From positions 5,146,001 through 5,210,000 of the forward strand of contig NC_087460.1 of NCBI RefSeq assembly GCF_036321535.1: a stretch of DNA of 64,000 nt, in the 5' to 3' direction. Shown in pieces: positions 10,429 to 54,872 of this stretch. The notes beneath the pieces are model-generated. The model made no database searches. It had not been told where the DNA came from and worked only from the letters and a program-made list of their open reading frames with translations. Source of the stretch: Camelus dromedarius. Taxonomy: Eukaryota. A program made the translations under genes and the position numbers. Each line of letters starts with the position of its first letter. The first letter of the stretch is position 1.

Positions 10429-10860
10429 TTCTCAAGGCCTGTTTTTGGATCCCTGACTCTTCTGACAGCGTCTTCATCCACTCTGTGTCCAGGGAGAGAG
10501 CGCGGTCATCCAGAGGAGGGAAGGGGGAGGGAAAGGCTGTGAGGGGGAAGGGGGGACCATTCCGGGAGGAATGTTGTAAGGAATGAACTATTTGCATAAA
10601 CAAGGCCAAAAAAAAAAAATTTTCCAGTTTAATTTAGTTTTGGTTTTGAAATCCCTGATGGTGGTGCCACCTGCTGGCCTGTGTGGGGAAGGGCTAGAGA
10701 TGGGGCTGCATTTTCAGGGACAGAAAAGTCCTTGGTTGGAGGCCCAGACTGTTTCTCAATCTGATGGGAACTCTCCTGTCCTTCAGGGCCCTGCCTGGGA
10801 ACTGCTGCTGTGTTTACAGGCTTCCTACCCAAATGGCAGTGGGAATTGCATTTGAGGGGG
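10429..10860 (-). promoter_or_regulatory. C1R 5'UTR and proximal promoter
   Basis: Immediately upstream of the exon-1 donor (AAAT|GTGAGT). Composite TATTTGCATAAACA at 10589-10602 (overlapping FOXA, C/EBP and octamer matches). CTCF-consensus CCAGCAGGTGGCAC at 10664-10677 (minus). Motif matches only. Confidence 0.55.
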
Positions 10861-13667: not shown

Positions 13668-16600
13668 TCAGTCCTTCCTGCCCATCACGCTCTTGATCCA
13701 GTCCACGTAGTTGAGGACTTTGGTGTAGAAGCCGTACCCCTTGCCACATCCGATGCCCCAGGAGACGATGCCCGTGGCCACCCAGTGATGGGCACGATCG
13801 TCCCACACCACAAAGGCACCGCCACTGTCCCCCTGGCACACACCCTGCTGCAGCATCTCACCCCCCGCGCAGAACATGTTGTCGGAAAACACCTCGTTCC
13901 TCCGCTTGTCGCGGAGCCAGGCCTCGCAGGCCTCCCTCGGGGCCACGGGCAGCCGCGAGTATTTCAGCTCCGTGGTCAACCAGCCCATCTGCACGCCGAA
14001 GCCGCTGACGTAGCCCAGCCGGCCGCTGCGGTACAGCGCCTCGCGGGCGGGCAGGCAGACCGGGAGGAGGCTGGGGCCCAGCGGGACGCTGTGCTGGAGC
14101 TCCAGGAGGGCGATGTCCCCGTGGAAGTTGTGGGACTCGTTCTGACGGTAGTCGGGGTGCACGACCACGCGGCGCACCGGGTGGCCGCCCCTCTGCAGCA
14201 TCTCAGCCGCGCTCGTGTGGCCCAGGAACACACCCGCGCTCCGGCTCTTCCCCAGGAAGAAGCCGTCCTTGGGGTAGATGGTGTGGGCGGCCGTGAGGAT
14301 CCATCTGTCGCCCAGCAGGGCCCCGCCCCCGCGGCCGTAGATGCTGGTGAGGGCCTGCCAGGGGAAGTTGCCCGGCTCAGCTCTGGACGCTCCGCGGGTC
14401 TCCCGCTCCTGGGCGATGGGGTTGACAGGCCGCCCACAGACTGGGGGAGAGGAGGGGTAAGGGCGAAAATCAGCAGCTGCATCAAGATGCCTTTATTAAA
14501 AACCTGCTTCTGGGAAACGCTCTTCCTTCTGCCTCCTCGGCCATTTTAAAGCCACTTCTTTAGATTCTTGGTGGGACCGTCTTTGAGCAAAATCATGCAG
14601 CGAGCAGTTTGTCTTAAGTGCCTCCTGTCTGCTTCTGTGTCATTTCTCCATTTTAACATCTCCCAGTACCCCCCCCCCCCCCAACAAAGCACTGTATGAC
14701 CCTGCGCCGAGAACTTTCTGTGGCTCAGAAGTAACACTTGAGAAATGTACTCAGATTGGGCAAGAAGGGCAATGTTTGACTCAAAAAAAATGGGTTTTAA
14801 AAATGGTGGCNNNNNNNNNNNNNNNNNNNNNNNNNNNNNNNNNNNNNNNNNNNNNNNNNNNNNNNNNNNNNNNNNNNNNNNNNNNNNNNNNNNNNNNNNN
14901 NNNNNNNNNNNNNNNNNNNNNNNNNNNNNNNNNNNNNNNNNNNNNACCTAAGAGAACTGTGTGTTTAGACAGAAACTTGTAGACGAATGCTCACAGCTGC
15001 ATTATCTGTAAAAGGTCCAAAGTGGAAACAACCCAAATGTCCCTCAATTGATGAATGGATGAACAAAATGTGGTCTAACCACACAGTGGCATTCTATTCA
15101 GCCATGAAAAGGGATGGGGTCCTGATATATGCTACAATGTGGATGAACCTTGAAAACATTATGGCAAATGAAAGAATGCAGACACAAAGGTCATTGTATG
15201 AATCCACTGCTCTGAGATGTCCAGAGTAGGCAAAGCCATAGAGACAGAACGTGGTTAATGGTTGCCAGGGATGGGGGAGGAGTGAGTTGGAGTTTCTTTT
15301 GGGGCTGATGGAAATGTTCTAGGATTAATGGACACACTAAAAATTACTGGTTTTTACACTTTAAAACAGTGATTTTTATGTTTTATGAATTTTATCTCAA
15401 CAACAAAAATACTTTAAAAATGCAGGGTTTTCTGGCACTGTGGCATCTAGGCAGGGAGATATTTGTGGGACAGAGGCCTTGTCTGTGCATCCTTACAGCA
15501 GACCATACCAAGAGAGGGCTTCCTCTTATTTAAGCACATCTGTCCCTCCTCCCCTTCATTGTCCCATCTGATTAATTTCCTTCAGACTTTAAGTTTCTCA
15601 GTTGTCTCTTGATCCTCCAAAGAGAAGGGATAAGCTCCTTGCTTCTCCTTTTCCAGGCCTTCTTGGCTCCCTTTTTCTTTCTCACCTTCTGCCTTCATCT
15701 CCCCCTTTCTTCTGAGGATTCCTTTAAACCCTGAGTCTTGCGCCCCTGGCCCTGCGCACAGCTGAGGCTCGTCTGGGAAGTGGCCATGATCGTGGCACTG
15801 CAGGTCCCCACTTACCAGGTACACAGCGCGGAACGTCCTCCCCTTCCTGCGTCTGCTTCCAGGGGACCTGGGCGGTGCAGGTGAGGGTCCCTGAGAAGTG
15901 AATGAGGGGGGTAAGCAGACTCAGAATTGGGAGGTGGGGGCTAAAAGAGGCCGCAGGCCCCTTGGTGGGAGTGAGGCAGGTAGGAGCTGGTTCCTTAGCA
16001 GGTAGGGACTCACCTGCTGCCACGGCCTGATAATAGGGTGCCTGGCAGTGGCTCTGGACTTTGGCAGGTTTGTCTCTATGTGTGTTGACGGCCTCAGGGC
16101 CCCCACTGGCCTGGCTGATGGGCTGACTATGATTCACACCTATAGGAAAACAGTGGTTATTAGGACTGAGAACAGATTTGCAGACTGGCAACCCAGGCAC
16201 TGATTCTGGCCTGTGGCCATATTTAGTTTGACTGCAGTTTTTTTTTTTTTTTTAAACAAACACACAGCATTTGAACTATTTTTCACCAATCAGATTGTTA
16301 ATGCTAAAGCAGTTTAAAAATAACTGTGTAAGTAGGGGATGGGAAAACAGGCACTTTCATATATGGTTAGTGGGAGGGAGTGTAAATTAGCAAAACTTCT
16401 TCTTTGTAAGGAAGTTTAGCCATATTAAGATTAAAATTGCAAACATTTTTTCACTTGGCATTTTCGTTTCTAAGAATTTACTCTCATGTATGTGCGCAAA
16501 GATGTATATACGAGTCTATCCAGAGCAGTACTGTTTGTGGGAGCAAAATATCTATCAGTGGAGGACTGATGAAATACACTATGATGCATCAATCAAAGGA

Positions 16601-19600
16601 ATATTATATGGCCATTAAAAAGAAGTAGGCAATGCTAACCATGTGTATATGGGGTGATTTTTAAGTTATATCATTGAATGAAAAATGGCAAATTAAAAAT
16701 ATTATGTAAACACACACACAACACAGTATTTATATTTGAGTGGCCTAGAATGCCTGTGGCAGAAGACCTGGGAAATGGAGAACAGGGTGGTTTCTGGACA
16801 TGGCAGCCAGGGACTAAGGGCAGAGATCAGAGGAAGATTCTTTCTTTTTTGAAAAATTTACCATGTGCTTGTATCATCTGTCAAAAAACCTGGGGTTGAA
16901 ATTTGAAAGTCTGAATTTTTGGCTTCTCTTGAAAAATGAGATGATCTGCAAGTGCCAGGCTTGTAAATCTGCAGGGAAATAGCGGCTGGAGCTGAGATGC
17001 TGCCCCTGAGGGAGCAGGGCCAGGTTGGGCAGGAAGGGGCTGGGACCAGGTGAGCTGGAGCCTCCAGCCTCATCTTCCACCTGCCACTTCAAGATCCCAG
17101 GGGCCACGGCCATGGGCAGAGTCTGCCCTCCCTTACCCCTGGGGGCACACTCACCCACGGCTTGGTAGAGGGCCAGGAAGCCCTTGTGGAGGCCTGGGGT
17201 CCCGTCCTCAGAGGAGGCGGGTGCACGGAAGGTCAGCCGCAAACTGTTTCCCAGGGACACAAACTCCCTGTCACCAGGGGTGCTGCCCAGCGGGGAGCCT
17301 TGCTGCCCACAGAACCGGCTTGGATCCATCCCACTGGCTGTGATCTGAAAGGGGAGCGGGACAGACAGGTGTGGGGTGAATCTGCACCACAGGGGGTCAG
17401 GGTCATGCCACGGGCATGGACCCCAGGCCTGTCTAGAAGGTCTGCACACCCCTGGGGCTTGGAATTCCTACCACCTCATGGGACCTTCCTCAAGTAGCTT
17501 CCTGTTCCATTATTGGCTCCCAAGTTCCTTCCTTTCATGACCAGACAATTAGCCTACCATGTTATCTCATACAGCCGCTATATTTTAAGAATTGAAATGG
17601 AAACTTACAATAACTGGACTAGAAGTTCTAAGAAGGCAGGAATGGCATCTATTTTGCTCACCACTGAGTCCCTGATGCTCAGTGTAGTACCTACAGCACT
17701 GACGCTTTGAATCAAAGACTATCAGATGCAAGTCCCTCCCATCCGGCTTCCTCCACCCCCCCCATCACCTTTTACATCTGAGTGACTTCCTAGGGCCAAC
17801 GCCTGAGAAGCAAGAAGCCCCTCTGCAAAGACTGAGCTCCTGGGGTCCCTGGCCTTCCCTGTTCTCCATTTGCAGTGTCCCTCCTCTTACCCCACAAACT
17901 GTAAATGAAGCCCCCATAAGGTGTGGAATCTAAGGACACAAAATATACACAGTGTGGGTACACTGGCCAGTGTTGCCTAACTTAAATCAAATCCCTGCTC
18001 AAATCCCTTCTGCGGGTTCCCCAGGGAAGGGCACCCTGGAAGGAGTTCCCCTGGCTCGCCTTTCATAATCTCTCTTCTGGGGACACAGCTCACTGCTCAG
18101 CTCATTTGAGTTGTGACTTTAATGTTGATCAACATATCCTGAGTTCTTGCTCCGTCTTCATTTCTTTGTTCTCCCCACATCTCAAATTCCTTTAAGATTC
18201 CATCCAGCCCATCTCACTGTGATCACCTTAACTGGGTTAAAATTGGCGTGAAGAAAATTTCTCAGTCACCCCAAATGCCTAGCTTCGGCACATCTGTTCT
18301 TTTCCTTAGCATGTCAACAAATCTAAGTCCCCGTATTTAAGAGGCCTACCTCTTGGGGAAGAAGCATTTTGCTCCAGGAAACTGTCTTTTCCTGATAAAC
18401 TTGGTTGTTAAACCCTCCGGTTTTCTTTTTACCCTTTCTCATGAGTTGTTGGTTAAATAAAGTCACTTAGGAGTCTAACTAGCAAAGCAGAGTGACATAG
18501 GGAGTTTCTAAACCTCCCCGGGTCTCAGTTTCCTCTCCTGTAAAATGGTCTGTGAGGCGCCTTCCAGCCAGGACAGCGCCCCGTCCTATGGCAGCTCTCT
18601 GGTTTCTGCAGGAAGAGCAGTGTGGAGGAAGATACCAAGTACCCGCTCATTCAGAATGCGTGGTGTTGTGCATCCCACACACACGGCAAGCTTAGACTTC
18701 ATTCATTCTTTCCTTTATTCCTTCAACAAACAGTAATTGACTAGTTCTACGTGTGAGAGACTGTGCCAGGTGCTGGGGACACGGGTGTGAACAAGACACA
18801 CTTCTGTTACGGAGGAGCCCAGAGCCTGGCTGAGGATACTGACAAGCAAAAGATGGACTAGATTACAGCGTAGATTACAGTGTGCTGGATTCTGCATTCG
18901 AGGGGTGTGTGTGTGTGTGTGTGTGTGAGATTTGCTCTGGAAGCAGAGAGGAGGGAACAATCTTATTTCTGAGCTTGAGCTCTCTCAGTGACAAGGGGAG
19001 GGTCAGACTGGGATGAACATTGTCCATGACTAAGAACAGGGCACAGGGAGGTGCTCAAGGACTCAGGATGAGTTGAATGGAGTCCTGGATTCTGGTTAAG
19101 TCTGAAGAAATAAATACACACATTTATCTCCTTTCCTACCTCAAAACCCACTCACATGACAGTAGAGGGGTAAAAATGGATCTGTGGTCAAGGATCAGAG
19201 GGACAGCAGCTGAGAGATGTCCACAACGCCTGGAAGGTGGAATGGAGGCGGACACATGGTAATGTGTCTTGGTGAGGGGGACAGAAAGCAGGAGGTTCCG
19301 ATCACAGACCCCCACGAAGTGTCAGAACTGGGGTAACCAGGAACCTGTAAGTTTCCTCTAAGGAAACTGGCTCTCGCCAAAGAAAACCCTTCTGCTGCCA
19401 ACATGTGGGAGGCGCCCGCATCACATCTGGATCACCTTGTTGATAACCCGATTTTCAAACCTGTCATTTGACAGATTTCAGCTATCCACACAGAGCATCC
19501 AAGAGCTTCCTGCACGTCACTCTTAAATAGGAATGGACAGCCAATTTTTATCAGGCATTGTAGGAAAGTCTCCAAGATGAGAAGCAGAGGCCAAAACTCA

Positions 19601-22479
19601 TGAACAGTCAAAAGGAACTTGATGAAGCAGAGATAATACGGGGAGCAGAGAATCGTTTTAAAATAATCCCAATAGAGGGAGAAGGGTAGATCGTGCCTCT
19701 ACGAAACAAGAACAGGATTCCATAAAAAGGCACACTTAGAAAATAAGAATGGGCCTTTAGACATGAAAAGTATGTTAGCAGAAAAAAATTAATTGAAAAG
19801 TTGGTATTTAAAATGAGGAAATCTCCCACAAAGTGGAACAAAAAGAAGAAAAACAAAACAGAAAAGATAACAAAATTAGAGAATATGTCTAGAACCTAAC
19901 AACAGCGAAATGAAAGGAGTTCCAGAAAGAGAAAATAAAGTAGATGTCTGGAAATTATTGAAAAATTACTCCAAGAGGCAGGGAGGGTGTAGCTCAGTGG
20001 CAGAGGACATGCTTAGCATGTATGAGGTCCTGGGGTCATTCCCCAATACCTCTGTTAAAAAAATAAACCTAATTACCTCCTGCCACACCAGAAAAAAAAA
20101 AGTAATAAAATTATACAATAATAAATAAATAAAATATTTAAAAAATTAGTACAAGAGTATTCCCAAATTGAAGGTCTCGATTAAAAGAATGTCTGGATTG
20201 AAACTTTGTACAATAAATACAAAATGACCAGACTGGCATAAGTCATATCATGAGAGTTCAGAATACTGGTAACAAAGAAAAAATGCCAGAAGTTCTAGAG
20301 AGAAAACACTAAAGATCAGGGTTCATAACAACACTAGTGCCAGAAGCTTACAATGTCATCAAAATTCTGAAAGAGAATGACTTCCAACCTAGCATGTAAT
20401 CAGATCAACTCTCCGTCAAGTGTGAGGGGAGAACTAAGACACGGAGGGTATGTAAGGTCCTCGAAAATGCACTCCCTCCTTCCCTTCTGGGAGGAGAAGG
20501 TGCTCCTCCAACAAGAGGGAGTAAACCAAGAAAGAGCGGAAGGTGGGACTCAGCTCCGACACAAGGCAGGAAAGGGAACCCCCAGAACCAGGGGGAAGGG
20601 AAGTCCCAGCAGTGGGAAGGCTTTGAAAGCAAAGAACTCAGACTTAAGAAATAGGTCACCAAGAGATCTTCTGGGGGGGGATGTCCCCAATGAAAAGGAG
20701 GACTAAGAGATGGAGATTTGTACTTGAAGATGTCAAGAGAGTCACTCTCTGGGCTAAGAGTTTGGGGAGATTTTTTTACAGAGAGAACTAAGCAAACCCA
20801 AAATCAAAACAAAAACACAAAAAACCCCAAAGAACACTATGTAATTATTGACTCCTGGGAAACCCAGAAGTTGGAGAAGAAAGGAAATTGTACACCATGG
20901 GCTCAGTGTGAACATCTTAAAGTTATCATCCTGTAAATAATGAATATAGATTAACTAAAAATGATAATGTAGGTAAAGTGAGAGGTTGAGGGAGGAGAAC
21001 TGTGTGAAGTGAAGGTCCAAGAGAGAGAAAGCTAGTCCTCATCAGTTACCATTGGAAGTTAATAGATAAGTTATTTATACTTACGAAAATAAATACCAGA
21101 TGAAACAGTGGCATGAACCATGACTGCCCTGGGAGGCAGCAGTGGGGGCTGGAGGCCACTGGCTTTCTTTATAAGCCGTGTAATTCATACTCTGATTGTT
21201 AAAAAAGATTGTGTGCATGCATTACTTCGATACAGATAAAATTTAAATTAAAAGATGCTGTGAAGTGCTTTTTCTAAAGTGTCCTTATTTTGACTAATGC
21301 CCCTGTCATGTGAATTGTGACAGCCCCTCTAAGGGGGACTGGAACAGTCACCTAATCTTTTGTTATTATTTACCTCCAGAATCCTAACCGGACAGAGTTA
21401 ACTCAACAAATGCTCAAAGATGCATTTTTAACAACTGACATGTGAGTACTTGCTGTTTACCCTAGGGGTCGGCACTATTTGTGTGTCCCCTTGAAAGACT
21501 TCAAAAAGCAGGGCCTAACCTGCTGCCCTCTCCCCTGTGGGCAGGGGTGTAAGGCAGGGACGGGGCTGCCGATGGGGGGCTGGGCACCAGGCAGACCTGT
21601 CCTCCCAGGCAGGCTTCGGGATTCCGATTCTGGGCACCGCCACCTCCCACTGCCCCTGGGCGCCAGGCTGGAAGGCTCCCTCCCCGGAGTCCCTCCGGGA
21701 TCCCACCCAGCTCACTGTGACAGAGTCCCCCTCACAGTCTGGGGACAGCTCCAGGTCAAAGTCCTGGAAGATGAGTCTCACGACAAAGCCCTCTGGAGCC
21801 TCGATGTCCGTGGAGCTCTCTTGACCTTTGACATAGGGCTCTGGGTACCCGGGGGACGTCAGCTTCTGGGGCAGTCGCTGGGCCAAGAGCACGGAGCCCT
21901 GTGTGGAGCAAGCCTGGAGGACTCCCCAGAGGAGCAGCCACCACTTGTGAGCGGGTGAGGGCAGAGGGGGCCACACTGCTGAGGCCTGGGGCCTGTGGAG
22001 ACATGAGTGGGGCAGGCAACGCTAAGGGACGAGGGGCCTGGCTTAGGATCTGCAGCTGTGGCCTCAGGCCCTGAGACCTGGGCACTTCTGGCTGCTCCCT
22101 AATTATTGCCCCCGCCCTTCGCCCCAGTTCCTGGTCAGCCTGAGCTCAGACTGTGAGTTTTTCACCATCGCCCATCTCCCTGGAAAGTCTCATCCAAAGC
22201 AGGGGCTGCTTTCTGCTTCACCCAACCCCATCCCCACCTGGGGAGGGACCATTAAATATGAGAGTTTCCTGGCCCTGTGAGTGTGTGTGTGTATGTATGT
22301 GTGCGTGTGTGTGCGTGTGTGTGCGTGTGTGCCCGTGCGCTCCCCTGCATCTGGCCCGGCTGCCCGTCCCCGTCCCCACCCTTCTTTCCAGCCCTTCCAG
22401 GCACACTCACATCTTGCCCGGGGAAGCATGTGGAGGGGGGCTTCCCCAGAGACAGTTCCCCCTCGCTGAGACTGGGCAT
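13668..22479 (-). CDS. C1RL: Complement C1r-like protein (CUB, partial CCP, serine protease domain), about 486 aa
   Basis: join(complement): 22411-22479, 21716-21943, 17155-17344, 16014-16139, 15816-15890, 13668-14440 = 1461 nt in frame. WWLLLWGVLQAC signal region, CUB (FCGQQGSP), VCGRPVNP..GNFPWQ, TAAH, DIALL, CQGDSGG; no R-IIGG activation site. Start codon and exon-2 acceptor are uncertain (see findings). Confidence 0.93.
14946..15420 (+). mobile_element. Old L1 (L1M-type) 3' fragment
   Basis: AAAGTGGAAACAACCCAAATGTCC..TCAATTGATGAATGGAT..AACAAAATGTGGT...TGGATGAACCTTGAAAACATTATG, characteristic of an L1 3' end. Confidence 0.8.
16260..16760 (+). mobile_element. Old L1 (L1ME-like) 3' fragment
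   Basis: GGGAAAACAGGCACTTTCATAT...GGGAGTGTAAATTAG...GTTTCTAAGAATTTAC...AAAGGAATATTATATGGCCATTAAAAAGAA. Confidence 0.65.
18700..18960 (-). mobile_element. L2 LINE 3' end containing a (TG)n tract (about 18903-18927)
   Basis: TTCATTCATTC...CAACAAACAGTAATTGA...TGTGCCAGGTGCTGGGGACAC...AACAAGACA. Confidence 0.6.
19500..21200 (+). mobile_element. Decayed L1 ORF1/5' region, interrupted by a SINE at about 19980
   Basis: A-rich sequence with ORF1-like remnants (GGAGTTCCAGAAAGAGAAAAT; AAAATTCTGAAAGAGAATGACTTCCAACCTAG). Confidence 0.55.
19980..20105 (+). mobile_element. tRNA-Ala-derived SINE (Vic-1 type, camelid)
   Basis: GGGAGGGTGTAGCTCAGTGG..ATGCTTAGCATG..GAGGTCCTGGG..CCCCAATACCTC followed by an A-rich tail with AAACCTAATTACCTCC. 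Confidence 0.85.
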
Positions 22480-22720
22480 CTGGAATCAGACATCTGAGCC
22501 CTGAGAGGACTTGGCCCAGGCCAGGGAACAGGAAGTGGGGCTGGAGAAGGCCGTGGGGGAGGAGGGGAAGTTACTGGAAATGTATTGGGTAACTGGCCGC
22601 AGTTCCCTTTTTCTAAATCGTTGGGTTGAGCGCCACCTGCTGTCTGACTCAGGACTAGCTCGCCCACTGCAACTCAGAGGAAAAACCTGGCCAGAACCAT
22701 GCTGGCCCTCAGAAGAGAGC
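22480..22720 (-). promoter_or_regulatory. C1RL 5'UTR and promoter
   Basis: Upstream of exon 1. ETS-like CAGGAAGTG near 22530, STAT-like TTACTGGAA near 22571-22579, CTCF-like ACAGCAGGTGGCGC at 22630-22643 (minus). Motif matches only. Confidence 0.5.
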
Positions 22721-23059
22721 AGGGGTGGGAGGCACTGACTACTGACCTATGCACCATTTAAAACTAACTTTTACCATGCATTTGTCACACACGGTAGCAT
22801 AGCTCCTTGTGAGTGAGGCTGTCTGTCGCCTTTCATTGGCCAGACCTGTCCCTCCCTGACCTCTCCGCTCAGTCCCTGACCGGCCTGCCTCCTGTAGAAA
22901 CTGCAGTTTGCCGCCCTACCTTCCGCCCCCTCACCAAGCAGGGCGGGGGGCACTCACTTGGGTCGTCTCTGAATCCTGCCCACAACTCTGGACGCTGCTT
23001 GTCCAGCAGGGTCAGGCCGGCACAGGGCGGGGATCAGGCCCAGTCTGAAGCTTCTTTAG

Positions 23060-23375
23060 GCAAATACCAGGGCCGAGTCTCTGGGCAGAGGCTGCCCTCC
23101 CTGAACCCCCAGGAGGGACACTTGCCCACAGGTTGGTAAGGGGCCAGGAAGCCCTCGTGGAGGCCGGGGCTCTTGTCCTCAAAAGTCAGCCGCAAATTGC
23201 TCCCCAGGGACACAGATTCCCTCTGACCAGGGATCTGGTGGCGGGGTCAGGGGTGGGGGTTTGGGGTGTGCCCACTGGGGAGCCTTACTGCTTCTCTGTA
23301 CCCCTGGAGGTCACAGGGTCACGTCCTGGGGTGGACTCCAGCTTGGTCTAGAAGGTCTGCACCCCTCTGGGGTTC
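23060..23375 (-). pseudogene. Degenerate duplicate of C1RL exon 3 with flanking intron
   Basis: Aligns by eye with 17095-17460. Reads Q*GSPVG..PGQRESVSLGSNLRLTF-EDKSPGLHEGFLAPYQPVG versus QQGSPLGSTPGDREFVSLGNSLRLTFRAPASSEDGTPGLHKGFLALYQAVG. Stop TAA at 23285-23287, donor GT>GC at 23124-23125, acceptor half deleted. Confidence 0.88.
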
Positions 23376-23544
23376 AGCGTCATAGCTCACGGTGGCTTCG
23401 TCACACCATTGTAATAATTGTATATACCTTTTCCCTCCCCATTCCACTGCCTGCAAAACCTGCCCTGGGCGGAGGAGAGCTCACCTACTCCAGTGCTCCA
23501 TCTCTTTTAAAAAATTTTTGTCTGTCTTCCAAAAAAATTTTTTT

Positions 23545-23697
23545 AAAACACTTTATTTTTTTTTTATTGTATTACTTAATTACTTCACTTTGGCAGTGGG
23601 GGAGGATTAGGTTTATTTATCTTTAGAGGAGACACTGGGAATTGAACCCAGGACTTCATACATGCTAAGCACGCTCTCTACCACTTGAGCTAGATCT
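23545..23697 (-). mobile_element. tRNA-Ala-derived SINE (Vic-1 type)
   Basis: GGGAATTGAACCCAGGACTTCATACATGCTAAGCACGCTCTCTACCACTTGAGCTA with a T-rich tail. Confidence 0.85.
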
Positions 23698-24214
23698 CTC
23701 TGAGAACTTCCTGTCTGATAAGCGTCATATTGCTCCGTCCTCCTGGGGGACTCTGACCTGAGGAGGTAGCTTCCGGTCAGGCTTGGGTATTTTTGTTGTC
23801 TCCTGAGTAACAGGGTCACCATGGAGATGAGGACCCCAAATACGACAGCCAGAGCATTTGTGTCTCTTATGATCACATCCAAGGAAGGGATGCTAAAGGC
23901 CACGAATTCCAAGAACCCTCAAGTTTACTGAACTCAGAGATTTAATGCTTCCTCTTCTTTCTTCTTCCAGCCCTTCTCACAGGGCTGATTCCTAGGTCAC
24001 AGCGCAGGGGTTCCTCCCATCAATTCAGATACTTGCAGGCTCTTAAGTTCTTGAAAACCCTTGAAAAAAACACCAGAGTAATAGGGTTTTACCTTTGTGC
24101 TTAAAGGGAGGAGAAGAAATTCCTAAAGATATACTTCTGGTCTAACAACCAAACTGTAATCTCACAAATACGTATGCTTTTTTGGAAGTTGAAGAGGTTA
24201 ATTAATTAATTAAT

Positions 24215-24357
24215 TTCCGGGGTGGGGGAGGGTCAGTAGGTCTATTTATTTATTTATTATTAGTTTTTTTTTTTTTTTTTTTTGGATGGACGTGCTGGGG
24301 ATTGAACTTGGGACCTCATGCATGCGTGCGCTCTACCGTCTGAGCTATACCCTCCCC
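24215..24357 (-). mobile_element. tRNA-Ala-derived SINE (Vic-1 type)
   Basis: CTGGGGATTGAACTTGGGACCTC...CTCTACCGTCTGAGCTATACCCTCCCC. Confidence 0.85.
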
Positions 24358-24489
24358 GCTGAGCAGGTTAATTTAAATATTGTTTTCAGAGTAGTAAGTT
24401 ACTGATGGCCAACCAGAGCTGCAGGCTTTTAGGGTTTATAGATGACATCGCACTGGCTCTACAGCACTCCTTTCTGAAGTCTGCATGTC

Positions 24490-24640
24490 TTTTTTTTAAT
24501 TTAGTTTAATTTTATTTTTTGAACTTTTTTTTATTGAATTATAGTCAGTTTACAATGTTGTGTCACATTCCAGTGTAGAACACAGTTTTTCGGTTATACA
24601 TGAACATACATACATTCGTTGTCCCATTCTCTTTTGCTGT
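24490..24640 (-). mobile_element. L1 3' terminal fragment
   Basis: TTTTTTATTGAATTATAGTCAGTTTACAATGTTGTG..ATTCCAGTGTAGAACACAG...TTATACAT. Confidence 0.7.
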
Positions 24641-24994
24641 GAGTGAAGTCTGCGTGTCTTAAAAGGATTATTTATTTTCACACCAGGGAGACTGAATGTT
24701 CTCGATTCACCACTTTATCAGAATGGATTCTGCGAAGCAGAATCGTGCCTGATTTTCTGCAGCTCCAGGAGGAGAGGGATTGTACTCTCATCTTCCTGAG
24801 ATTTGTTTCACGAGCATTTGTGGGTCTTTGCTTTTTAAAACCAAGCACCAGCATTTCACTACTGAGTATTCAGAGGGAAAAAAAGGCTGGCCTAAGAAGC
24901 TTAAAATGTATGAAAGAAAAGAGAAAGAAGCAAACAGATGTGGAACACGTTATGATTTTCATCCACACTTGGGAGGCAGGTCCCTTCCCTTCAG

Positions 24995-25160
24995 GTCCAG
25001 TGTGAGGGCTTGGCCCCAGCGAAGCAGCGGGGCTGTGGCTTGGGTCGTCTCCAGGGCAGGAGGGACAGAAAGTTCTTGGAAATAGATTGATTGTCATAAT
25101 AGCCTTTAAAAATTTCTCTGGGGTAGACACCACCTGCTGTCTGGCTCAGAGGTAGCTGAA
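24995..25160 (-). pseudogene. Relic copy of the C1RL promoter
   Basis: Collinear matches to 22495-22660: TGAGGGCTTGGCCC/TGAGAGGACTTGGCCC, AAGTTCTTGGAAATAGATTG/AAGTTACTGGAAATGTATTG, CCACCTGCTGTCTGGCTCAG/CCACCTGCTGTCTGACTCAG. Confidence 0.7.
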
Positions 25161-26269
25161 ATATTGGAGACAGTTTTTACTCCAACTGAGGCTTGGTATC
25201 TCTGAGACCAGGAAAACCTCTCACACACTGGCATTCAGACTTAACTTGAAGGAGGAGCTGAAGGAAATTTCTGTGGGGGCCACGTCAGCTGTCCATTTCT
25301 CTGAATTTCCTGATTTCAAAGACTGTTTCCATTTCTTTATGGTCCTGGTCCTCTGTCAGTTGTCCCCTAGCCTGTGGCTGTCTCTGTCCCTTCCTTTCCA
25401 GGCCGGGTGCTCTGGGGACAGGAGCCATGGCCACCTGGAGGCATTGGGACCTGACTTCATCAAAATGAGATGGTGGAGAGAGAAGACTCTAGCGAAGGCT
25501 GGAGAAGAGCTCGCCTCCATGGTGTCCTCCGCTGTTGTGGGTCTATACTGCTCCCCCCGCCTTGAGCTGGAAAACTGGGGATGCAGCCAGTGTTGAGGTC
25601 CACTCAAAATTAAAAAAAAAATAAAAAAAATTAATTTAAAAAAGAAAGGCACAAAGGTAGAGCCAAAAGGCCAATAGATGAATTACAATGGAGTTCTGAA
25701 CTCTAAACTGGTTTAATTTGGGAGAACTTGCTTCTAGTATGGTGACTTATTAAAACTCGTCCTGGTTTGTCTGGGGCCAAGGGGTTTCCTGGGACACGGG
25801 GTGTTCAGTCCTAAAACTGGTTCAGTCCCAGGCCAGCTGGGACAGTTGGTAATTTCTAGCCCTTCAATCTGTATTATCCCCTTCCCTTAGCCAAATGTGA
25901 GCTGCTAAAGAGCAAAAGCCACACTGCTCTAGGTGTGGGCCCCCAGCACCGGTAAGAGGACTGAATAAAGAAAATAAAGGACGCAAACTACGAAATTGTA
26001 AGTACGCTACATCCACAGAAGTGGAAAACCCAAGAGCAGTCTAGAATAACTGTGTCTTAGAGCATAGGGCTATGGACGGTTTAACAAATGTTTCTCTGTT
26101 TAGTAAAATTCTTGTAATGTCATTAAATCGTTTGAATAATTACAAAGCAAATGTATTTAAAATGATAACTGTGACCAGAGAGCCCTTCCTAAGCCAGACA
26201 AGATGAGAAGGATGAGGTCATGGATACTGAAGATGATGCTGGACCCTGGCTCTGGGTCTTCTTTTTTTT

Positions 26270-26426
26270 TTAAAAAAAATTTTATTTGTTTATTATTGAT
26301 TGTTTTATTTTGATGGGGGTGGAGGAGGTAATTAGGTTTGTTTATTTTTAGAAGAGGTACTGGAGGTTGAACCCAGGACTTGTGCATGCTAAGCATGGCC
26401 TCTTCCACTTGAGCTAACCTCGCCCC
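26270..26426 (-). mobile_element. tRNA-Ala-derived SINE (Vic-1 type)
   Basis: GAGGTACTGGAGGTTGAACCCAGGACTTGTGCATGCTAAGCATG...CCACTTGAGCTA. Confidence 0.85.
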
Positions 26427-26569
26427 TTGGCATCTTCAATCCATGTGATTAATGAAGAACTTTTTGTCCTTGGAGACGAGGTCAGGCCACTCACGGATCC
26501 TTTCACTGGGAGCTTATGTCTAAAGACAAATTGATGCCCCACTGTCTCTTCTCTCCCCTCATCTCCAAT

Positions 26570-26980
26570 TCTCACTTAACACCTTCTGAGCCTGCTTCTA
26601 GGTCCTTTGAATTATGTTTTTCATTAATCAAGGGGGCAAAGGGGCAGAAGCAGGCAGAAGGGGCAGTCTTCAAAGCTGTGATGGGGGATGGAAGCAGAGC
26701 AGAGGGAGAACGCGGGTGTGAGTGCACCCGGTACACAGGCTCATTTTCAGGGTTTGGATTTTTATTTTTCCTTTTATTCTTGACATTCCCCTCGGTGCTG
26801 CCACCTGCTGTCCCGCATGGGGAAGGGCCCAGCGGGGGCGCCTGGGCTTTCCGGATGGGGGAGGCTTTCCTGCAGCCTCGATGGGACCCCGGCATTTAGA
26901 GAAGAGTCTGCTCTCTCTTGGAATCCAAACAGCCATGGGGGCGGGCTCCTGTCCTCACGCAGATTGTCCTTCACGTCGGG
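26570..26980 (-). pseudogene. Relic C1R-like exon 1 and promoter
   Basis: Collinear matches to 10421-10800: CTCAC donor, TTCTGAGCCTGCTTCTAGGTCCTTTGA vs TTCTCAAGGCCTGTTTTTGGATCCCTGA, AAAGCTGTGATGGGGGATGG vs AAAGGCTGTGAGGGGGAAGG, TGCCACCTGCTGTCCCGCATGGGGAAGGGC vs TGCCACCTGCTGGCCTGTGTGGGGAAGGGC. Confidence 0.72.
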
Positions 26981-27084
26981 GTTTCCGCGACCAGTGTCAG
27001 GCAAGGAGAGAGATACAGGAGAGAGGTGGCGATCGGAGGGGCTGAGGAGGCCTAAGTCAGTGGGGCTGGGATTCTGGGCTTCTG

Positions 27085-27230
27085 TCCTTTATTTTATTTA
27101 TTTGGTGATTTTATTTTGGGAGGGGGAGGTAATAAGGTTTATTTATTTTTGGACGGGGTACTGGGGATTGAACCCAGGACCTCCTGCATGCTAAGCATGT
27201 GCCCCACCACTTGAGCTACACCTTCCTCTC
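27085..27230 (-). mobile_element. tRNA-Ala-derived SINE (Vic-1 type)
   Basis: GTACTGGGGATTGAACCCAGGACCTCCTGCATGCTAAGCATG..CCACTTGAGCTACACC. Confidence 0.85.
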
Positions 27231-27753
27231 CCGGGCTGCTGTTCTTGGAGCCCAAGGGAGATGTGGACAGACCGGGGACTTAGGGGTAAGAGTGGCTCTG
27301 CTGGAGATGGGTCTGTCCTGCCTGCTCCCCTACCCCCAAGACAGCTCAGGTTTTGACCTTGGCTTCCATAGGTTAAGGGTACTTAGGGAGGGGCTGGATC
27401 AACCCCAAAGGCCGGTTAGCCACTAGCCTCGCCCCTCTTGTCCACCTTCCCCACTCTGTCAGCTATCTGTCTAAAATGTCAACTGATCCTGCCCCTCCCC
27501 AGCTTAAAGCCTTTCGGTGACTTTGCCCTCTGTCCACATAGTGAAACTCAAGACAATTGATCCTCGGGGCAGGTTCTTCATTCATTACTGGGGCTCTGTT
27601 CACCGTGCTCTGTGCTGTGTCCTCCCCTCATATGTGTTCCAGCTACACCGATGATCTTATAGCTTCCCAAACACACATGTGCTCGTGTGATTCCCTGGCC
27701 AATTCCAGGTTCTTCAGTATCAGAGACCAAAAGGTAGCATATAGCACAGTGGT

Positions 27754-27880
27754 GGAGAGAGGGTATAACTCAAGTGGTAGAGCGCGTGCTTAGCGTGCAC
27801 GAGGTCCTGGGTTCAATCCCCAGTACATTCATTAAAAATAAATAAACCTCATTACCTTCCCCACAAACAAACAAAGAAGG
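27754..27880 (+). mobile_element. tRNA-Ala-derived SINE (Vic-1 type)
   Basis: GAGGGTATAACTCAAGTGGTAGAGCGCGTGCTTAGCGTGCACGAGGTCCTGGGTTCAATCCCCAGTAC. Confidence 0.85.
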
Positions 27881-29369: not shown

Positions 29370-30000
29370 TGTTAGTTACCTGTTGTTGTGTAATAGGTCG
29401 CTTGCACACTTAGCAGTTTAAAACAGCAAACGTGTATTATTTGACATAGTTTCTGAGGGTCAGGAATCCAGAAGCAGCTTAGCTGGGTGGTTTTGGCTCA
29501 GGATCTCTCACAGTCAAGGTGTTGGCCACGGTCATCTGAAGGTTTGACTGGGGCTGGAGGGTCTGCTTCCAAGGTGGTTCACTCACATAGCTGTGAGCTG
29601 GAGGCCCCAGTTCCCTGCCACATGGCCCTCTTCTTAGGACACTTGAGTGTCCTGGTAACAAGCAAGTGGCTTCCCCCAGAGTGATCTAAGATAGAAAGAG
29701 CAAAGCAGAGGCCAAAATGTCTTTAAATGGTTTGATTTGATTTGATTGTGGTAAAAGCACTTAACATGAGATCTACCCTCAACAAAATTTTAGGTGTGCC
29801 ACACAGTACTGCCAACTCCAGGCACAATGTCTTTTATAATCTGGCCTTGGAAGTAGCACGGCATCTATCACTGCTGCCATGTTCTACTGGGCACCCAGAC
29901 CGCCCCTGATACAGTGTGGGAAGGGACTGCACAAGGAAGGAAGTTCAGGGAAGCAGGGATCCTTGGGGGCCGTCTTGGGGGCTGGCGACCACAGAAGTAG
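29370..30000 (-). mobile_element. MLT1 (MaLR) LTR with a short L1 insertion (about 29730-29830)
   Basis: CTTAGCAGTTTAAAACAGCAAAC...TTTCTGAGGGTCAGGAATCCAG..GCAGCTTAGCTGGGTGGTT...TCATCTGAAGGTTTGACTGGGGCTGGAGG.TCTGCTTCCAAG. Insert: ATTGTGGTAAAAGCACTTAACATGAGATCTACCCTC. Confidence 0.7.
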
Positions 30001-31299
30001 ACATATGATTTTAGTACGATACATGCAGAAGATCGGCTAGCAGGACATTGTCTTTGCAGGGAACAGTTGTATTTCAGACGAATTAACCTGGAGCCAGAGT
30101 GCCTCTGGGGCTCTGACCCTCTCCTCCTCATCCCTGAGATCTGAAGGACTCCTTCACCACCCCATCAAGTCGCAGGACTGCACAGATCAAAGCATGACCT
30201 ACAGGGGACCAAACGTAAGAGGAGGTGGAGCTTTGGGAGGACAGCAAAGGATTAAAAAGGACCCAGAAGCTGTTGAAAAGGAGGAGGGTGGGCAAGAAGA
30301 AGAAGCCCCAGAGAGGATGCCCTTTCCAGCCTTGGGAGGGTAACCATAGTGTGAGTCCTGAGAATCTAGGACGGCGGTCCCACACCAGACCGTTGTCCAA
30401 AGGGACAAGTTCAGAGGCTGGAGATTTCAGTTCCAGAGCTCCCACCCCCCCGCGGCTTTGTGCGGACTCTCAAGCCTGAGATAAAGTCCTTTAGTAAAGG
30501 ACTCTTTAAACATACTGTGTATGTGCCTGGCTTGCTAATAGCGGGCTGTTCTGCTCTGGCCCGCACCATCCCTTCCTCTGACAATAAGGAGTTTATGGGT
30601 GATGCTGCACTTGGACCTCAGATGATTGACTGCTATAATGCTCTCTGTTCTAGTTCCCTTTGTTTCTTCCAAGACTTTAACAAACCCTTATTTAAATGGT
30701 GCCCCCTTTTCCCATAGCACTACTCACAAAGGAAGGAGGGGTGGTGAATGGCAGTGGCCGTTAGTGGGGCTTGGCGACCCAGCTGCCCCTTCCCATGTTG
30801 GGGTTCTCTCTCCACTGGGGACCTCGCAGGATAGGCAATGGTTACACTAAGAATGACAGCAGTTTCCTTACAGCTGGGTCAAGGACAGCGAGCAAGGCTT
30901 CTCTGCAGACAGCTGCCAAGGGCAGGGGGCGGGTGTGCAAGGCAGGATTGTAAGTAGATCAGTCACAGAACGTCAAGGCCAAACAGACCAGTCCTGCAAG
31001 GAGAAAAAGGCACAGAAGTGAAATAATTTGCCCAAGATTGCACAGCGAGGCAGCGACAGTACCTCTGAAAGCAGTGCTCTGAGCTCTGCCTCGCCTGCCC
31101 ACCTAGGACAGTGGGACAAGGAATAAACCACGGCTCCTGTTACAGGCAGAGAGGGAGGAAAGAGAGGTGGTGCCGGGTCTCAGCAGTCTAGAAAGGCCTC
31201 ATGGACAGAATCGTGGGGATCCACAAATGCGTGTGGAAGGAAAACCATGCAGACTCCTGGCTCATCTGTGGAGCAGGTAGGGCTGGGGAGGCCCAAACT

Positions 31300-34230
31300 G
31301 GGGCTCAAATGGCGGGGTCACCGGAGTGTAGAAAGATGGCAGGGGTGTCCGAGGCTGGAGGGTGGTGGCCTCTTGGGCAGGGTGGGGACGCTGGCTGGTG
31401 TTGGCATCCAGGAGGAAGAAGGGCGATGAGGCAGGGGGGCAGGAGAAAGTGGCTGCACCTGCGGCTGGTGGCTGGAGGAGGCCGGGCCCAGACGGAGCCC
31501 CTGCCCGGGAGTCCAGCGTGCTGGGGCTGGGCCCCTGTCCCACCATCAGCTCCCTCCCTCCCGCCTTGAAGCCTCCTCTCAGCTGGTGGGGAGGTGAGTG
31601 TGGTTGTGGCAGGAGCAGAAGTAGCGGCCCAGATACTGGCCTGGGCTGGGACACTTGTCCTTGGCACGGTGGAGGCGGGGGTGCCTGCAGGATACAGTGA
31701 GAGATTCCAGTTCTGGAGCCCGGGTCGGGGCAACACTCCTCTCCATCCATCACCCCCAGACGTTTTACCTGCCTAGACAAGTAAAGATGCCCCTGCCATC
31801 TTGGACAGCCAAGGTGAGGCCGTACTGTCTGGAAATCTCCCGCACCAGTCATACCGTGGTGTAAATACAAGCACCGTGTGACCTCGGGTTGTGGGCGGTG
31901 GGGCCTCGTCCTTAACGGCAGCAGACAAGGCTTTGCATCCAGTTAACAGAATTTCAGTCAAGTGAAGATGCAGGCGATGATGAAAGCAGCGATAGCTAAC
32001 ATTCCTCAGTGCGTCCTCTCTCCCAGGTACTGCGCCGAGGACGTTGACCTAGAAACGTCACAGCATTCCTGGGGGAAGGAAGTGCTCTCGGTATTGCCTT
32101 GTGTGACCGGCACATGTGGCTCGTTTACTGAGGGTTAGCGGATAAGAGGTGGCTGTCTGACACCAGGGCCTGCTAACCTGACCTCTGGGTAACACTCTCC
32201 CCCAATTTTGGGTGCCATTTCGGTTCATCTAGAGCCTCTGAGGCAAGTGGTTAACCATGAACCCAATGGCCTGGCTCTGCTGGTGACCCTCTGCTTGGGC
32301 ATTGCCCATGGGGGACAGAATGGAAGCTCCTAGGGACACCCCTCTCTTAATGGCCAGACAGGGAGTGAGGGCAGGGGGAGGTGAGACTTGGGACTGGGTT
32401 GGCAGAGGGGGAGGCTGGAGCCTCACCCCCAGACAGATGGTGGGCCGGCAAGTCCTTGAGAAGCAGAGGTCCCCTGTTCCTGCTGGAAGGGTGAGTGTGG
32501 TGGCAGATCAGCTCCATCTCAGGCCCCTGGAACCTAAGTGGCCTCTGGTGAGGGTGGGTGTTCAGCATGGAGCACAGGAGCCCACAGAGCTGGCCCAGAG
32601 CCATCCGTTGGCTGAGATCTTGGGGCAAGGAGGAGGAGAGGGAGGGGGAGGAGGGGGAGGGCCTGGGAGGTGCTGGTCAGGCAGGGCTACTGCTTGAGGT
32701 CTTGGCTCCTATCTCTGTTTCCTTCTTTCTGCCCTCCACGCAAACCCAGCTTGGCTACATCAGTCCTTCACAGAGCCCTTTGATTTTCCCATCAAGTCCC
32801 CTCACCCACCACCCTTCCACCTCCTGCTGTACCTGCAGGGTCTCCCCCATCCCGCCTGCTCATAATCGTGGACACAGCTCTGGGGTGGCTCCAGGTCAGT
32901 CCTGGGGACCCTGATAGCAAGGGTGCTGTCATGACTGAGGGGGTTATGGTGGGGGAAGTTGGGGGAGACGTCCCAGAGAGCTGGGTGGTGGTCCTCAGGC
33001 TGGGCAGGAGCAGCACTCTCCAAAGGAGGAGGAAGAGCCCCTGGAAGGCCAGAGGGGAGGGGCAGCCACAGTCAGGGACAGCCTCACAGCCACATCTTCA
33101 TCCTCAGCCACATCAGGGACTGCAGGCCCCTCACTGACCTTTGGGGACTTAAGCCTAGACCAGATGGGGTTCTCACTTCTTAAGGAATAACATTTGGGTG
33201 GGGGAAAGGGGCCAGATCTCTGTTCTCTCTTGGGATCCTAGGATTTGCAGTGGCCTCCGAGGGTCCCTGGCTGTTACAGGATCAGCTCCTGTCTGGGATG
33301 ACTCTGTGCTTTGCAGGTGAGCAATTTCCCACCTCCGCCTTAGCTCCCCTTTCAACATGCAAGTCTGGGCACATGGGGTGGGGGCATGTGGGAGATGGTG
33401 GCGGAGGTGAGGGGGCCATTGGGGACGGATACATGGCCAGACTTGGTTGTTCCTGCCTTCTCTGGGGCTGCTACCAGAACGTGGAGTCCTTGGGCAGCAC
33501 GTGGTCCTCTGCTTCAGAGGACGCAGCCCTGCTCCTGACCTCCTGTCCAGGTTAGCTGGTTTCTTCTGAGCAGAGGGGTCTGGATTGGCCTAAAGACTCA
33601 AGGCTAAAGGGCCATTTGGAGCTCAGGCTGGAAGGTTGCTTGTGACCATTTGGTGCTACCTGGGCTGGCGGACTGCGAGGGGGTGGGGGCCCAGCACAGG
33701 GCTGGCTCAGAAGAGTGCGGTTGCTCCATCTCACGTGGAAATAACATTTTGGATTCGTCATCATCTCTCTGGGGTCTAAGACTCTGGACCACAAGGCCAA
33801 AGTTGGTCCTGGGATCACAGCTGTGTGTGCTTCGGGAAGGGCTGGGGTGGGACACACCCATTGGAGGCATTGCCCCCCCCCCCCCGCCTTTTCTTCCCTC
33901 ACAGGTCAGTGCCCCTGGTGGCCATCTCTTCCATTTGAGGATGAGTGGTGCAGCCTGATTTGAATGAAGGGTAGGGTCCTGTCAGGGTGGGCATGTGGGA
34001 TGGGAAGTGCGTGTGTGTGTGTTTGTGTGTGTGTGCGTGCGTGTGTCTGGGGTGAGGCAGGGACGGCAACTCCAGCAGGGTGCTGGAGGAGGGAGGACTG
34101 AAGTGGTGGGTCTCTGGCTCCCACTGCAGCGAGCAGTGCCCCCTGCAGCCCACAGGGGAACCGGCAGGCCCAGCTTCCCAAGTCTGGGTGGGTCCTGCTC
34201 CTGCCCCTTGGACATGCCCTGAAGCAGCTC
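31300..34230 (-). pseudogene. Decayed C1R/C1RL-family paralog (promoter and exon 1-5 homologs)
   Basis: Promoter 34136-34230 aligns with the C1R promoter. Exon-1 donor CT|GTGAGG at 33902. Exon-2 homolog 32856-33040 (LFLLLWRVL signal; CUB SPNFPHHNP..STLAIRVP..DLEPPQSCVHDYEQ). Exon-3 homolog 32427-32618 (192 nt vs 193; ISA..LGQLCG..QG..M.L...K..A). EGF relic YLGRYFCSC at 31609-31635. CUB2 relic SSLGHP at 31342-31359. Several frameshifts. Confidence 0.85.

Positions 34231-38031: not shown

Positions 38032-38078
<47 letters not shown>

Positions 38079-54786: not shown

Positions 54787-54872
<86 letters not shown>

Follow-up and report, generated by a model that had tools for sequence, protein, structure and literature searches.

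How many C1R-family units has the locus around C1R and C1RL held, and what has become of those that no longer encode a protease? The question arises from an original prediction for the dromedary DNA analysed here (64,000 nucleotides, hereafter the window), which read five CTCF-like motifs in one orientation as the promoter modules of a tandem array of at least four or five units. All five motifs are present where they were reported, and all lie on the minus strand (Table 1). We name them A (CCAGCAGGTGGCAC), B (ACAGCAGGTGGCGC), C (ACAGCAGGTGGTGT), D (ACAGCAGGTGGCAG) and E (GCTGCAGGGGGCAC).

Table 1. Genes, promoter sites and relics discussed in the text, in window coordinates.
Feature	Position	Strand	Remarks
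C1R gene	1485-10680	-	CUB1 exons 9458-9688 and 7996-8190; trypsin exon 1485-2276
C1R exon-1 donor	10422-10426	-	AT/GTGAGT, split start codon; 251 nt from motif A start
Site A, CTCF-type core, C1R proximal promoter	10664-10677	-	conserved module ~10604-10718
C1RL gene	13683-22650	-	exons 21698-21943, 17153-17344, 15973-16143, 13683-14459
Assembly gap	14811-14945	.	last C1RL intron, between exon 4 (15973-16143) and last exon (13683-14459)
C1RL exon-1 donor	22406-22410	-	AT/GTGAGT; offset 233 nt; exon 2 next (21698-21943)
Site B, CTCF-type core, C1RL proximal promoter	22630-22643	-	conserved module ~22567-22686
C1RL exon 3 relic (second half of CUB1) and flanking intron	23005-23403	-	coding-like part 23118-23246; 6-codon deletion
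Site C block, decayed C1RL-promoter paralogue	25000-25183	-	core 25127-25140
Site D block, C1R-promoter-module paralogue	26737-26854	-	core 26798-26811
Unit 4 exon 3 relic (second half of CUB1)	32411-32673	-	nhmmer vs C1R and C1RL
Unit 4 exon 2 relic (first half of CUB1)	32844-33021	-	10-codon deletion
Site E block, conserved extended CTCF-type site	34075-34193	-	core 34136-34149
RBP5, four exons	35925-39340	-	bounds relic interval on the high-coordinate side

The 10-mer CAGCAGGTGG, common to A-D, occurs five times in the window against 0.36 occurrences expected from shuffles, and none of 100 shuffles reached five copies. An IUPAC CTCF core (CCASYAGRKGGCRS, at most one mismatch), searched independently of any matrix, has six matches in the window versus 2.27 expected; these include A with no mismatch and B and D with one each, and C and E need more. 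We also scored the 126,598 positions of the window with a CTCF count matrix modelled on MA0139.1, by which A is the top match at 21.2 bits, followed by B (17.4 bits, third), D (16.6 bits, fourth) and E (15.5 bits, fifth). Site C, in which the key C of GGC has become T, scores 8.7 bits (27th) and does not qualify as a CTCF core. A, B, D and E are strong, co-oriented matches to the matrix, and CTCF binding is predicted at all four. The sole strong CTCF-type site on the plus strand of the window, by the same matrix, is at 51876-51894. A, D and E also share the reported plus-strand segment GGGGAA, whose minus-strand form TTCCCC precedes the core by 6-8 nt.

Sites A and B belong to live genes. The exons of C1RL were placed by tblastn with the elephant and meerkat C1RL proteins, and the gene is supported by Pfam CUB and Trypsin matches as well as by named homologues. 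An assembly gap touches none of the five sites, and it leaves the C1RL frame unaffected, since it is intronic, its flanks are collinear with elephant (14985/14808 vs 20897/21256), and no elephant exon lies between them. The A core scores 20.1 bits in elephant, 23.3 in tenrec, 21.9 in vole and 12.8 in hedgehog, and in these four species the annotated start of the C1R coding sequence follows it at a distance of 165-250 nt (241 nt in elephant). The B core scores 15.5 bits in elephant, 17.1 in hedgehog, 14.5 in tenrec and 17.3 in vole, and five placental orders retain both cores. Next to B stands a conserved, AP-1-like TGAGTCA, and next to A a conserved A-rich block. A and B may work as promoter-proximal CTCF sites, a class that reportedly tethers distal enhancers. 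Like members of that class they are deeply conserved and lie on the transcribed strand, no more than ~250 nt from the start codon; D and E differ from it in having no live gene. A literature search found no paper on a shared, deeply conserved C1R/C1RL promoter element, and we know of no earlier description of one.

The original prediction had noted GTGAG at near-constant distance from four motifs. All four are present, 233-251 nt from the motif 5' end: those of C1R and C1RL (Table 1), one 236 nt from D (26575) and one 247 nt from E (33902), so that the D and E offsets fall inside the range set by the true donors of A and B. The chance of a GTGAG in such a 19-nt window is 0.026 per site. None was found within 450 nt downstream of C. 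The D and E sites are not conserved across species, as bat and hedgehog show (that at 33902 is lost in bat). Deer has a better donor sequence at the E-linked site, GGGTGAGT.

Similarity outside the motifs resolves the five sites into two robust pairs plus E and does not demonstrate the single family first proposed. C is a true paralogue of the C1RL promoter B: nhmmer aligns 25000-25159 with 22501-22662 (160 nt, E-value 8e-9), and profiles of the two blocks match reciprocally (E-values 4e-7, 7e-8 and 2.7e-6). D is a true paralogue of the C1R promoter module A. The A profile finds D orthologues in five species over up to ~100 nt (E-values 8e-12 to 2e-6), the D profile finds A at an E-value of 5.6e-12, and a similarity of this length (~100 nt) reaches beyond any CTCF footprint. 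For A-D and B-C, collinear similarity beyond the 12-14 bp motif is thus present, the very feature whose absence had been named as fatal to the array. We rejected a dispersed-repeat origin for the A/D and B/C blocks because their profiles find no further copies in the window and seven loci (~260 kb together). One simple block duplication does not account for the succession D (C1R-like), C (C1RL-like), B, A.

The two relic promoters have fared differently. The D core scores 16.9 bits in deer, 16.9 in bat, 14.1 in hedgehog and -2.4 in porcupine, which makes it intact in three Laurasiatherians including the window genome, weakened in hedgehog and decayed in porcupine; in elephant, tenrec and vole, the 10 kb ahead of C1RL yielded no D. 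The C core is not conserved and is a poor CTCF match, at -4.3 bits in elephant and -4.0 in hedgehog.

The interval between C1RL and RBP5 also contains coding debris homologous to CUB1 exons 2 and 3. Every protein search used single open reading frames, not joined spliced models, and human proteins among the matches were left out of account. The relic at 23.0-23.4 kb matches 17013-17492 by nhmmer (E-value 2.6e-25) and by tblastn at 59% over 49 aa (E-value 5e-12). Its elephant orthologue (L002:6364-6552) is open for 64 codons, and the relic is absent from hedgehog, tenrec and vole. Nearer to RBP5, the exon-2 relic of unit 4 matches the C1R exon-2 ORF at 33% over 51 aa (tblastn, E-value 1.3e-4) and 9456-9652 by nhmmer (E-value 9e-6); the exon-3 relic matches both C1R (7980-8167, E-value 1.3e-10) and C1RL (17149-17347, E-value 1.9e-10). 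A weak collinear chain, where EGF, CUB2 or CCP exons would follow CUB1 in unit 4, pairs 31606-31659 with C1R 7573-7617 (E-value 0.055) and 31783-31841 with 7776-7834 (E-value 0.61). The exon relics are collinear, in gene order and in the orientation of the family, and the exon-3 tree places them within it.

In a tree of exon 3, unit 4 of the window, bat and porcupine forms its own clade with 100/100 support, beside C1R (97/97) and C1RL with its relic (99/97). Monophyly of the two exon-3 relics of the window genome and elephant, a group named after the tree had been seen, is rejected by an AU test (p 0.0004), and we read this rejection as gene conversion with C1RL exon 3. The duplications are ancient and not lineage-specific: orthologues in bat, porcupine, elephant and hedgehog place them before the split of the placental orders, an age that rests on unit 4 in bat and porcupine and on C and the exon-3 relic in elephant.

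None of these relics qualifies as a functional family member, given deletions of 6 and 10 codons, the lack of a trypsin exon and no Pfam match, CUB included, for the three relic ORFs. Across 22.7-35.9 kb there is no trypsin exon similarity at E<0.05 and no significant trypsin, CCP or CUB2 relic. Because no trypsin exon survives outside C1R and C1RL, just two units still encode proteases, as had been predicted. Unit 4 is deleted in deer and partly so in porcupine, and its identity between the window genome and bat is flat, at 71-84%, across relic exons and introns, so nothing points to coding constraint.

Between the window genome and deer, the cores of D and E together with 50-75 nt around them show ~90% identity, in regions that average 65-71%. 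More broadly, the cores of A, B, E and, in Laurasiatheria, D are kept and are conserved above their flanks (D in porcupine excepted); C shows no such excess, and it and the coding relics drift or are deleted.

RBP5, whose exon-2 ORF finds named RBP5 proteins with E-values down to 1e-27, lies at 35.9-39.4 kb, which corrects the earlier map: all five sites are therefore on its C1RL side, and E, 1.8 kb downstream of the RBP5 stop codon, is not at an RBP5/CLSTN3 promoter. The 119-nt E block is recovered in four orders (E-values 1e-28 to 1e-31), and its core, kept in four placental orders, reads GCAGCAGGGGGCGC in deer (17.8 bits), bat (16.4) and porcupine (15.5). Outside the extended CTCF-type motif, Smith-Waterman, nhmmer and profile searches found no significant in-register similarity between E and A-D; the E profile does best on B (E-value 0.047), the A profile reaches E at 0.83, and in-register Smith-Waterman z values are at most 0.8. 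One B-E match (z 16) was rejected as homology, being an out-of-register CA-type microsatellite. E may thus be an unrelated CTCF site, and its link to the other sites rests on position and on a GTGAG at a fitting offset. Of the proposed array of at least four or five units, then, the additional C1R-family relics (23.0-23.4 and 32.4-33.0 kb) and the A/D and B/C paralogy stand, and E lacks significant similarity (best E-values 0.047-0.83).

One alternative is that E is an independent conserved CTCF site at the RBP5 3' end, the array being two genes, the C and D relics and exon debris. Beyond the missing similarity, the shared TTCCCC would be explained by the CTCF upstream motif, and the loss of the E-linked GTGAG in bat also fits. 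The true paralogues A and B are, however, equally unlike outside their motif, so an absence of similarity is expected at such an age. E moreover lies 1.13 kb upstream of the unit 4 exon-2 relic in the fitting orientation (the distance from motif to exon 2 is 0.99 kb for A and 0.70 kb for B), and its donor offset has a chance probability of ~0.026. On balance we hold an independent E to be possible but rather unlikely.

A second alternative concerns the factor that reads the motif. Because an E-box, CAGGTG, lies inside motifs A-D, another factor could read them: under this reading the motif is an E-box (CAGGTG/CACCTG; bHLH or ZEB/SNAI) or another promoter element, its conservation at A and B is a matter of ordinary promoter function, and C and D are neutral relics that keep it by chance. 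The placement of A and B within ~250 nt of a start codon, and the conserved elements beside them, arranged as in composite promoters, would suit it. But what is conserved is the full 14-nt CTCF core, the GGC and the CC/CA positions beside it as well as the hexamer; no E-box is present in E or its orthologues, which have GGGGGC and nevertheless show the deepest conservation; and D is ~90% conserved in deer and bat, where no gene is called. Nor would an E-box account for a putative upstream-motif-like element at canonical CTCF spacing. Extended CTCF sites with an upstream (ZF9-11) motif resembling CAGCTGTTCC are enriched among insulators (PMC12885311, PMC11417384), and in the consensus used here (PMC12885311) this motif is separated from the core that follows by 2-7 bp and a TGG-like triplet. 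At every site the best match lies 8-9 nt ahead of the core, with 7-8 of 10 positions over species at B, 6-8 at E (8 in deer and bat, 6 in the window), 6-7 at A and 5-6 at D; the null averages 4.55, with a P(>=7) of 0.023. The sites discussed here may resemble extended insulator sites in having a core plus a TTCC-ending element at canonical spacing, with B and E at 7-8/10 in most species and A at 6-7/10; they differ in that the matches are partial, D reaching just 5-6/10. We consider the E-box reading improbable.

It is also conceivable that D, E or both are still active promoters, of alternative C1RL first exons or of a non-coding RNA. Their GTGAG sites at promoter-like offsets and the better E-linked donor of deer suit this, 15-21% of the words sampled from 21600-27100 occur in some probable RNA runs, although C1RL exonic sequence makes up, by our own estimate, just about one tenth of that stretch, and a squirrel model (P0107) that fuses an RBP5-like lipocalin domain to the C1RL trypsin domain implies read-through across the C1RL-RBP5 interval; but introns or carried-over DNA may be the source of the extra words, and neither bat nor hedgehog conserves the donors. 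Gene calls are also absent from the 10 kb beyond RBP5 in deer, porcupine and bat, and from the sequence ahead of C1RL in elephant, hedgehog, tenrec and vole. We find this alternative hard to credit.

The explanation we prefer, with a probability of roughly 0.6, is that the stretch of 13 kb from the C1RL promoter to the RBP5 3' end contains the decayed remains of C1R-family 5' ends that were duplicated in tandem long ago, among which D and E are predicted CTCF sites retained for architecture. Live C1R and C1RL would each carry a CTCF-type site (core plus upstream element) on the transcribed strand, 230-250 nt before the donor that splits the ATG, and older cassettes of promoter plus first exons would have decayed. 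D would be the remnant of a C1R-like promoter, and C with the exon-3 relic that of a 5' end like the one of C1RL. A third, older paralogue has left mere traces of CUB1 exons 2 and 3, and E may have served as its promoter. On this reading two of the cassettes are live and three have decayed to differing degrees. After the death of their genes, D and E may have been kept as co-oriented loop anchors or as a boundary on the C1 side of RBP5-CLSTN3. A stacked insulator, as first suggested, is plausible and fits the orientation and conservation of the sites. The C1 complement cluster that such a boundary would enclose is interferon- and liver-regulated. The stronger version, in which D and E have been retained under selection since C1R-type copies died more than ~90 million years ago, and A, B, D and E form a stack of co-oriented anchors separating the C1 cluster from RBP5-CLSTN3, is speculative and, as a whole, unlikely.

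Comparable arrangements are known from other loci. Tandem protocadherin promoters are each said to have a conserved element and a CTCF site, which reportedly loops to a shared enhancer with an opposed site. The likeness lies in duplicated promoter-plus-first-exon cassettes whose CTCF-type site is co-oriented with transcription; A, B, D and E all share one orientation. In contrast to the protocadherins, just two of the units here are still genes, the rest being relics; a shared distal enhancer with an opposed site is not known, and no promoter choice is implied. Within the family itself, mouse reportedly has C1ra/C1rb and C1s1/C1s2. In cattle, LOC112446756 is a truncated CUB-EGF-CUB 'C1RL', and the C1R/C1S cluster also contains a pseudogene (PMC7866702). 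The locus thus appears prone to tandem duplication, truncated 5'-end copies and pseudogenes in these species as in the window. The cattle and mouse copies are, however, recent, lineage-specific and expressed, whereas the relics described here are ancient, common to several placental orders and located in the C1RL-RBP5 interval, and little more than promoter modules and one or two CUB exons is left of them.

For annotation, the C1RL-RBP5 interval contains family relics that are not to be called genes. If the sites bind CTCF, C1R and C1RL gain a common, deeply conserved promoter element, and the interval would become a natural case, with a date attached, in which duplicates have died but some of their regulatory sequence is kept for chromatin architecture. 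Gene death would then, if this is true, feed the formation of boundaries.

All five CTCF-type motifs of the original prediction, A (C1R promoter), B (C1RL promoter), C, D and E, lie on the minus strand exactly where it had placed them, and CAGCAGGTGG, common to A-D, occurs five times in the window against 0.36 expected. A search with an IUPAC CTCF core, tolerating one mismatch, picks up A, B and D. Among 126,598 positions, A ranks 1st, B 3rd, D 4th, E 5th and C 27th by a CTCF count matrix (MA0139.1) whose scores and ranks are to be taken with caution. The donor-like GTGAG is present, as predicted, at A, B, D and E (251, 233, 236 and 247 nt from the motif 5' end, respectively), and C has no GTGAG within 450 nt. 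Those of A and B are genuine donors of first exons, AT|GTGAGT, with the start codon split, and in elephant, hedgehog, tenrec and vole the called coding sequences begin 165-250 nt beyond the orthologous motifs. Beside the cores, an AP-1-like TGAGTCA (22647-22653, minus strand) lies directly upstream of B and is kept in the window and elephant, its hedgehog counterpart being TGAGTCG. An A-rich block, TTCAAAACCAAAACT (10620-10645, minus strand), follows the A core at a distance of ~20 nt; the window, elephant and hedgehog all keep it, and the D copies keep part of it.

Features of the window (bits are from the CTCF count matrix and are to be read with caution)
Feature	Position	Strand	Details
C1R	~10.7 kb down to 1.5 kb	-	CUB1 exons 9458-9688 and 7996-8190; trypsin exon 1485-2276
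C1RL	~22.65 kb down to 13.7 kb	-	exons 21698-21943, 17153-17344, 15973-16143, 13683-14459
RBP5	35925-39340	-	four recognisable exons; start near 39330, stop near 35930
Motif A core	10664	-	bits: 21.2 window, 20.1 elephant, 12.8 hedgehog, 23.3 tenrec, 21.9 vole
Motif B core	22630	-	bits: 17.4 window, 15.5 elephant, 17.1 hedgehog, 14.5 tenrec, 17.3 vole
Motif C core	25127	-	bits: 8.7 window, -4.3 elephant, -4.0 hedgehog
Motif D core	26798	-	bits: 16.6 window, 16.9 deer, 16.9 bat, 14.1 hedgehog, -2.4 porcupine
Motif E core	34136	-	bits: 15.5 window, 17.8 deer, 16.4 bat, 15.5 porcupine
Second-best CTCF-matrix match	51876-51894	+	18.0 bits, CCACCAGGGGGCAG, inside CLSTN3
Copy of C1RL exon 3 and flanking intron	23005-23403		E 2.6e-25; 59% over 49 aa
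Unit 4, exon-2 relic	32844-33021		gene order kept
Unit 4, exon-3 relic	32411-32673		gene order kept
Short interspersed repeat	19980-20145, 23540-23700, 26265-26430, 27088-27230, 27750-27870, 37750-37870, 40405-40545, 49940-50030, 54280-54400, 54970-55065, 55573-55660, 59985-60100		

Low-stringency self-comparison of the window gives two robust pairs, of C with B (160 nt, E 8e-9) and D with A (~85 nt, E 2e-6), but leaves E unpaired. Among profiles made from orthologues of each motif region, that of A matches the D region of five species over up to ~100 nt (E 8e-12 to 2e-6), that of D matches A in reverse, and those of B and C match reciprocally. The A/D likeness extends well beyond any CTCF footprint, through CACCAnCAGGnATTTCAAAA, and we read it as common descent. 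A dispersed-repeat origin of the A/D and B/C blocks is excluded because profile searches found no additional copy across the window and seven further loci. One short interspersed repeat accounts for most of the self-similarity of the window (about a dozen copies, ~80-160 nt, 75-96% alike, both orientations). CA/TG-type microsatellites lie at 22245-22330, 33974-34056, 38033-38080 and 54787-54839; an alignment of B with E is spurious and derives from those near the two motifs.

Of the five-copy tandem promoter array, then, the pairs A/D and B/C and the exon relics stand, but E has no significant similarity to A-D outside the motif (best E 0.047-0.83) and may be an unrelated CTCF site. A and B are also nearly without significant similarity, though they are certainly paralogous promoters, and the B profile reaches A in tenrec only (E 4e-4). 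The GGGGAA segment, on which the prediction also drew, reads on the minus strand as TTCC(CC), the end of an element that lies 8-9 nt ahead of the core. The CTCF upstream motif, a sequence similar to CAGCTGTTCC that zinc fingers 9-11 bind and that insulators are enriched for, has its canonical position there (PMC12885311, PMC11417384). The segment alone is therefore no proof that the promoter module gave rise to E.

The extra C1R-family units predicted to be hidden in the interval survive as decayed exons, at 23005-23403 and in unit 4, which comprises relic CUB1 exons 2 and 3 of a C1R-family copy. The first relic carries a 6-codon deletion and is absent in hedgehog, tenrec and vole. Its elephant orthologue (L002:6364-6552) lies upstream of C1RL in that genome, has an open frame of 64 codons and is far better preserved than the window copy, a state that may reflect gene conversion or alternative-exon use; its protein identity to the elephant's own exon 3 is 81%. 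In the exon-3 tree each relic clusters with the C1RL of its own species, window or elephant (C1RL and its relic, 99/97; C1R, 97/97), and monophyly of the relics is rejected (AU test p 0.0004). Because the relic of each species occupies the same place, with C on one side and B on the other, we read this grouping as gene conversion. Unit 4 of the window, bat and porcupine forms a separate clade (100/100), and is therefore a third, ancient C1R-family paralogue. The idea that the relics are hidden live genes is ruled out by the absence of a surviving trypsin exon among them, no exon-like conservation seen in unit 4, the deletion of unit 4 in deer and, partly, in porcupine, and the lack of called genes in these intervals in seven other genomes; EGF exon traces are weak. 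Deer L001:18056-18415, set against window 31078-33187, is missing ~1.7 kb including the unit-4 CUB relics, and the bat alignment is continuous across that stretch. The squirrel gene model P0107, named C1RL, has a lipocalin (RBP5-type) Pfam domain and a trypsin domain, and so resembles either read-through from RBP5 into C1RL or two models wrongly merged across the relic interval.

All relevant genes (C1R, C1RL and RBP5) are on the minus strand. RBP5, whose exon-2 ORF matches named RBP5 proteins, had been implied at 28-34 kb and is instead at 35.9-39.4 kb; A-E therefore all lie on its C1RL side, with E 1.8 kb past the RBP5 stop codon. CLSTN3 starts beyond ~41 kb, head-to-head with RBP5. An assembly gap (14811-14945) falls within the last intron of C1RL, with flanks collinear with elephant and 0 elephant exons in the matching stretch, and is without effect on the reading frame or on the A-E finding.

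The E core is GCAGCAGGGGGCGC in deer, bat and porcupine, and no D orthologue was found in elephant, tenrec or vole. The 50-75 nt around D and E are ~90% identical to deer, against a regional average of 65-71%. Judged by this identity and by orthologous core scores from the count matrix, A, B, E and, within Laurasiatheria, D behave as constrained elements, and C and the coding relics drift. D or E may also be live alternative promoters. The motif of A-D may be read as an E-box, against which stand upstream-motif matches of 7-8/10 at B, 6-8/10 at E, 6-7/10 at A and 5-6/10 at D (null mean 4.55) that appear to strengthen the CTCF reading.

Overall, the motif observation is confirmed and the tandem-array interpretation is partly supported. 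A literature search returned no paper that deals with CTCF at C1R/C1RL or with the C1RL-RBP5 relics; for additional C1R-family copies, the nearest precedent is a truncated copy and a pseudogene in cattle (PMC7866702). The closest analogue in concept to the C1R/C1RL cassettes is the protocadherin promoter array. On our reading, C1R and C1RL each have a promoter-proximal CTCF-type site that is deeply conserved, and the interval up to RBP5 contains three decayed cassettes, of which those of D and E have retained theirs. A, B, D and E point to lower coordinates, towards C1R, and the window has just one more strong site, at 51876-51894 on the plus strand, which has the opposite orientation and faces away from them. 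Under the convergent-orientation rule, divergent CTCF sites are typical of domain boundaries, and the arrangement of A, B, D and E relative to the site at 51876 would fit such a boundary.
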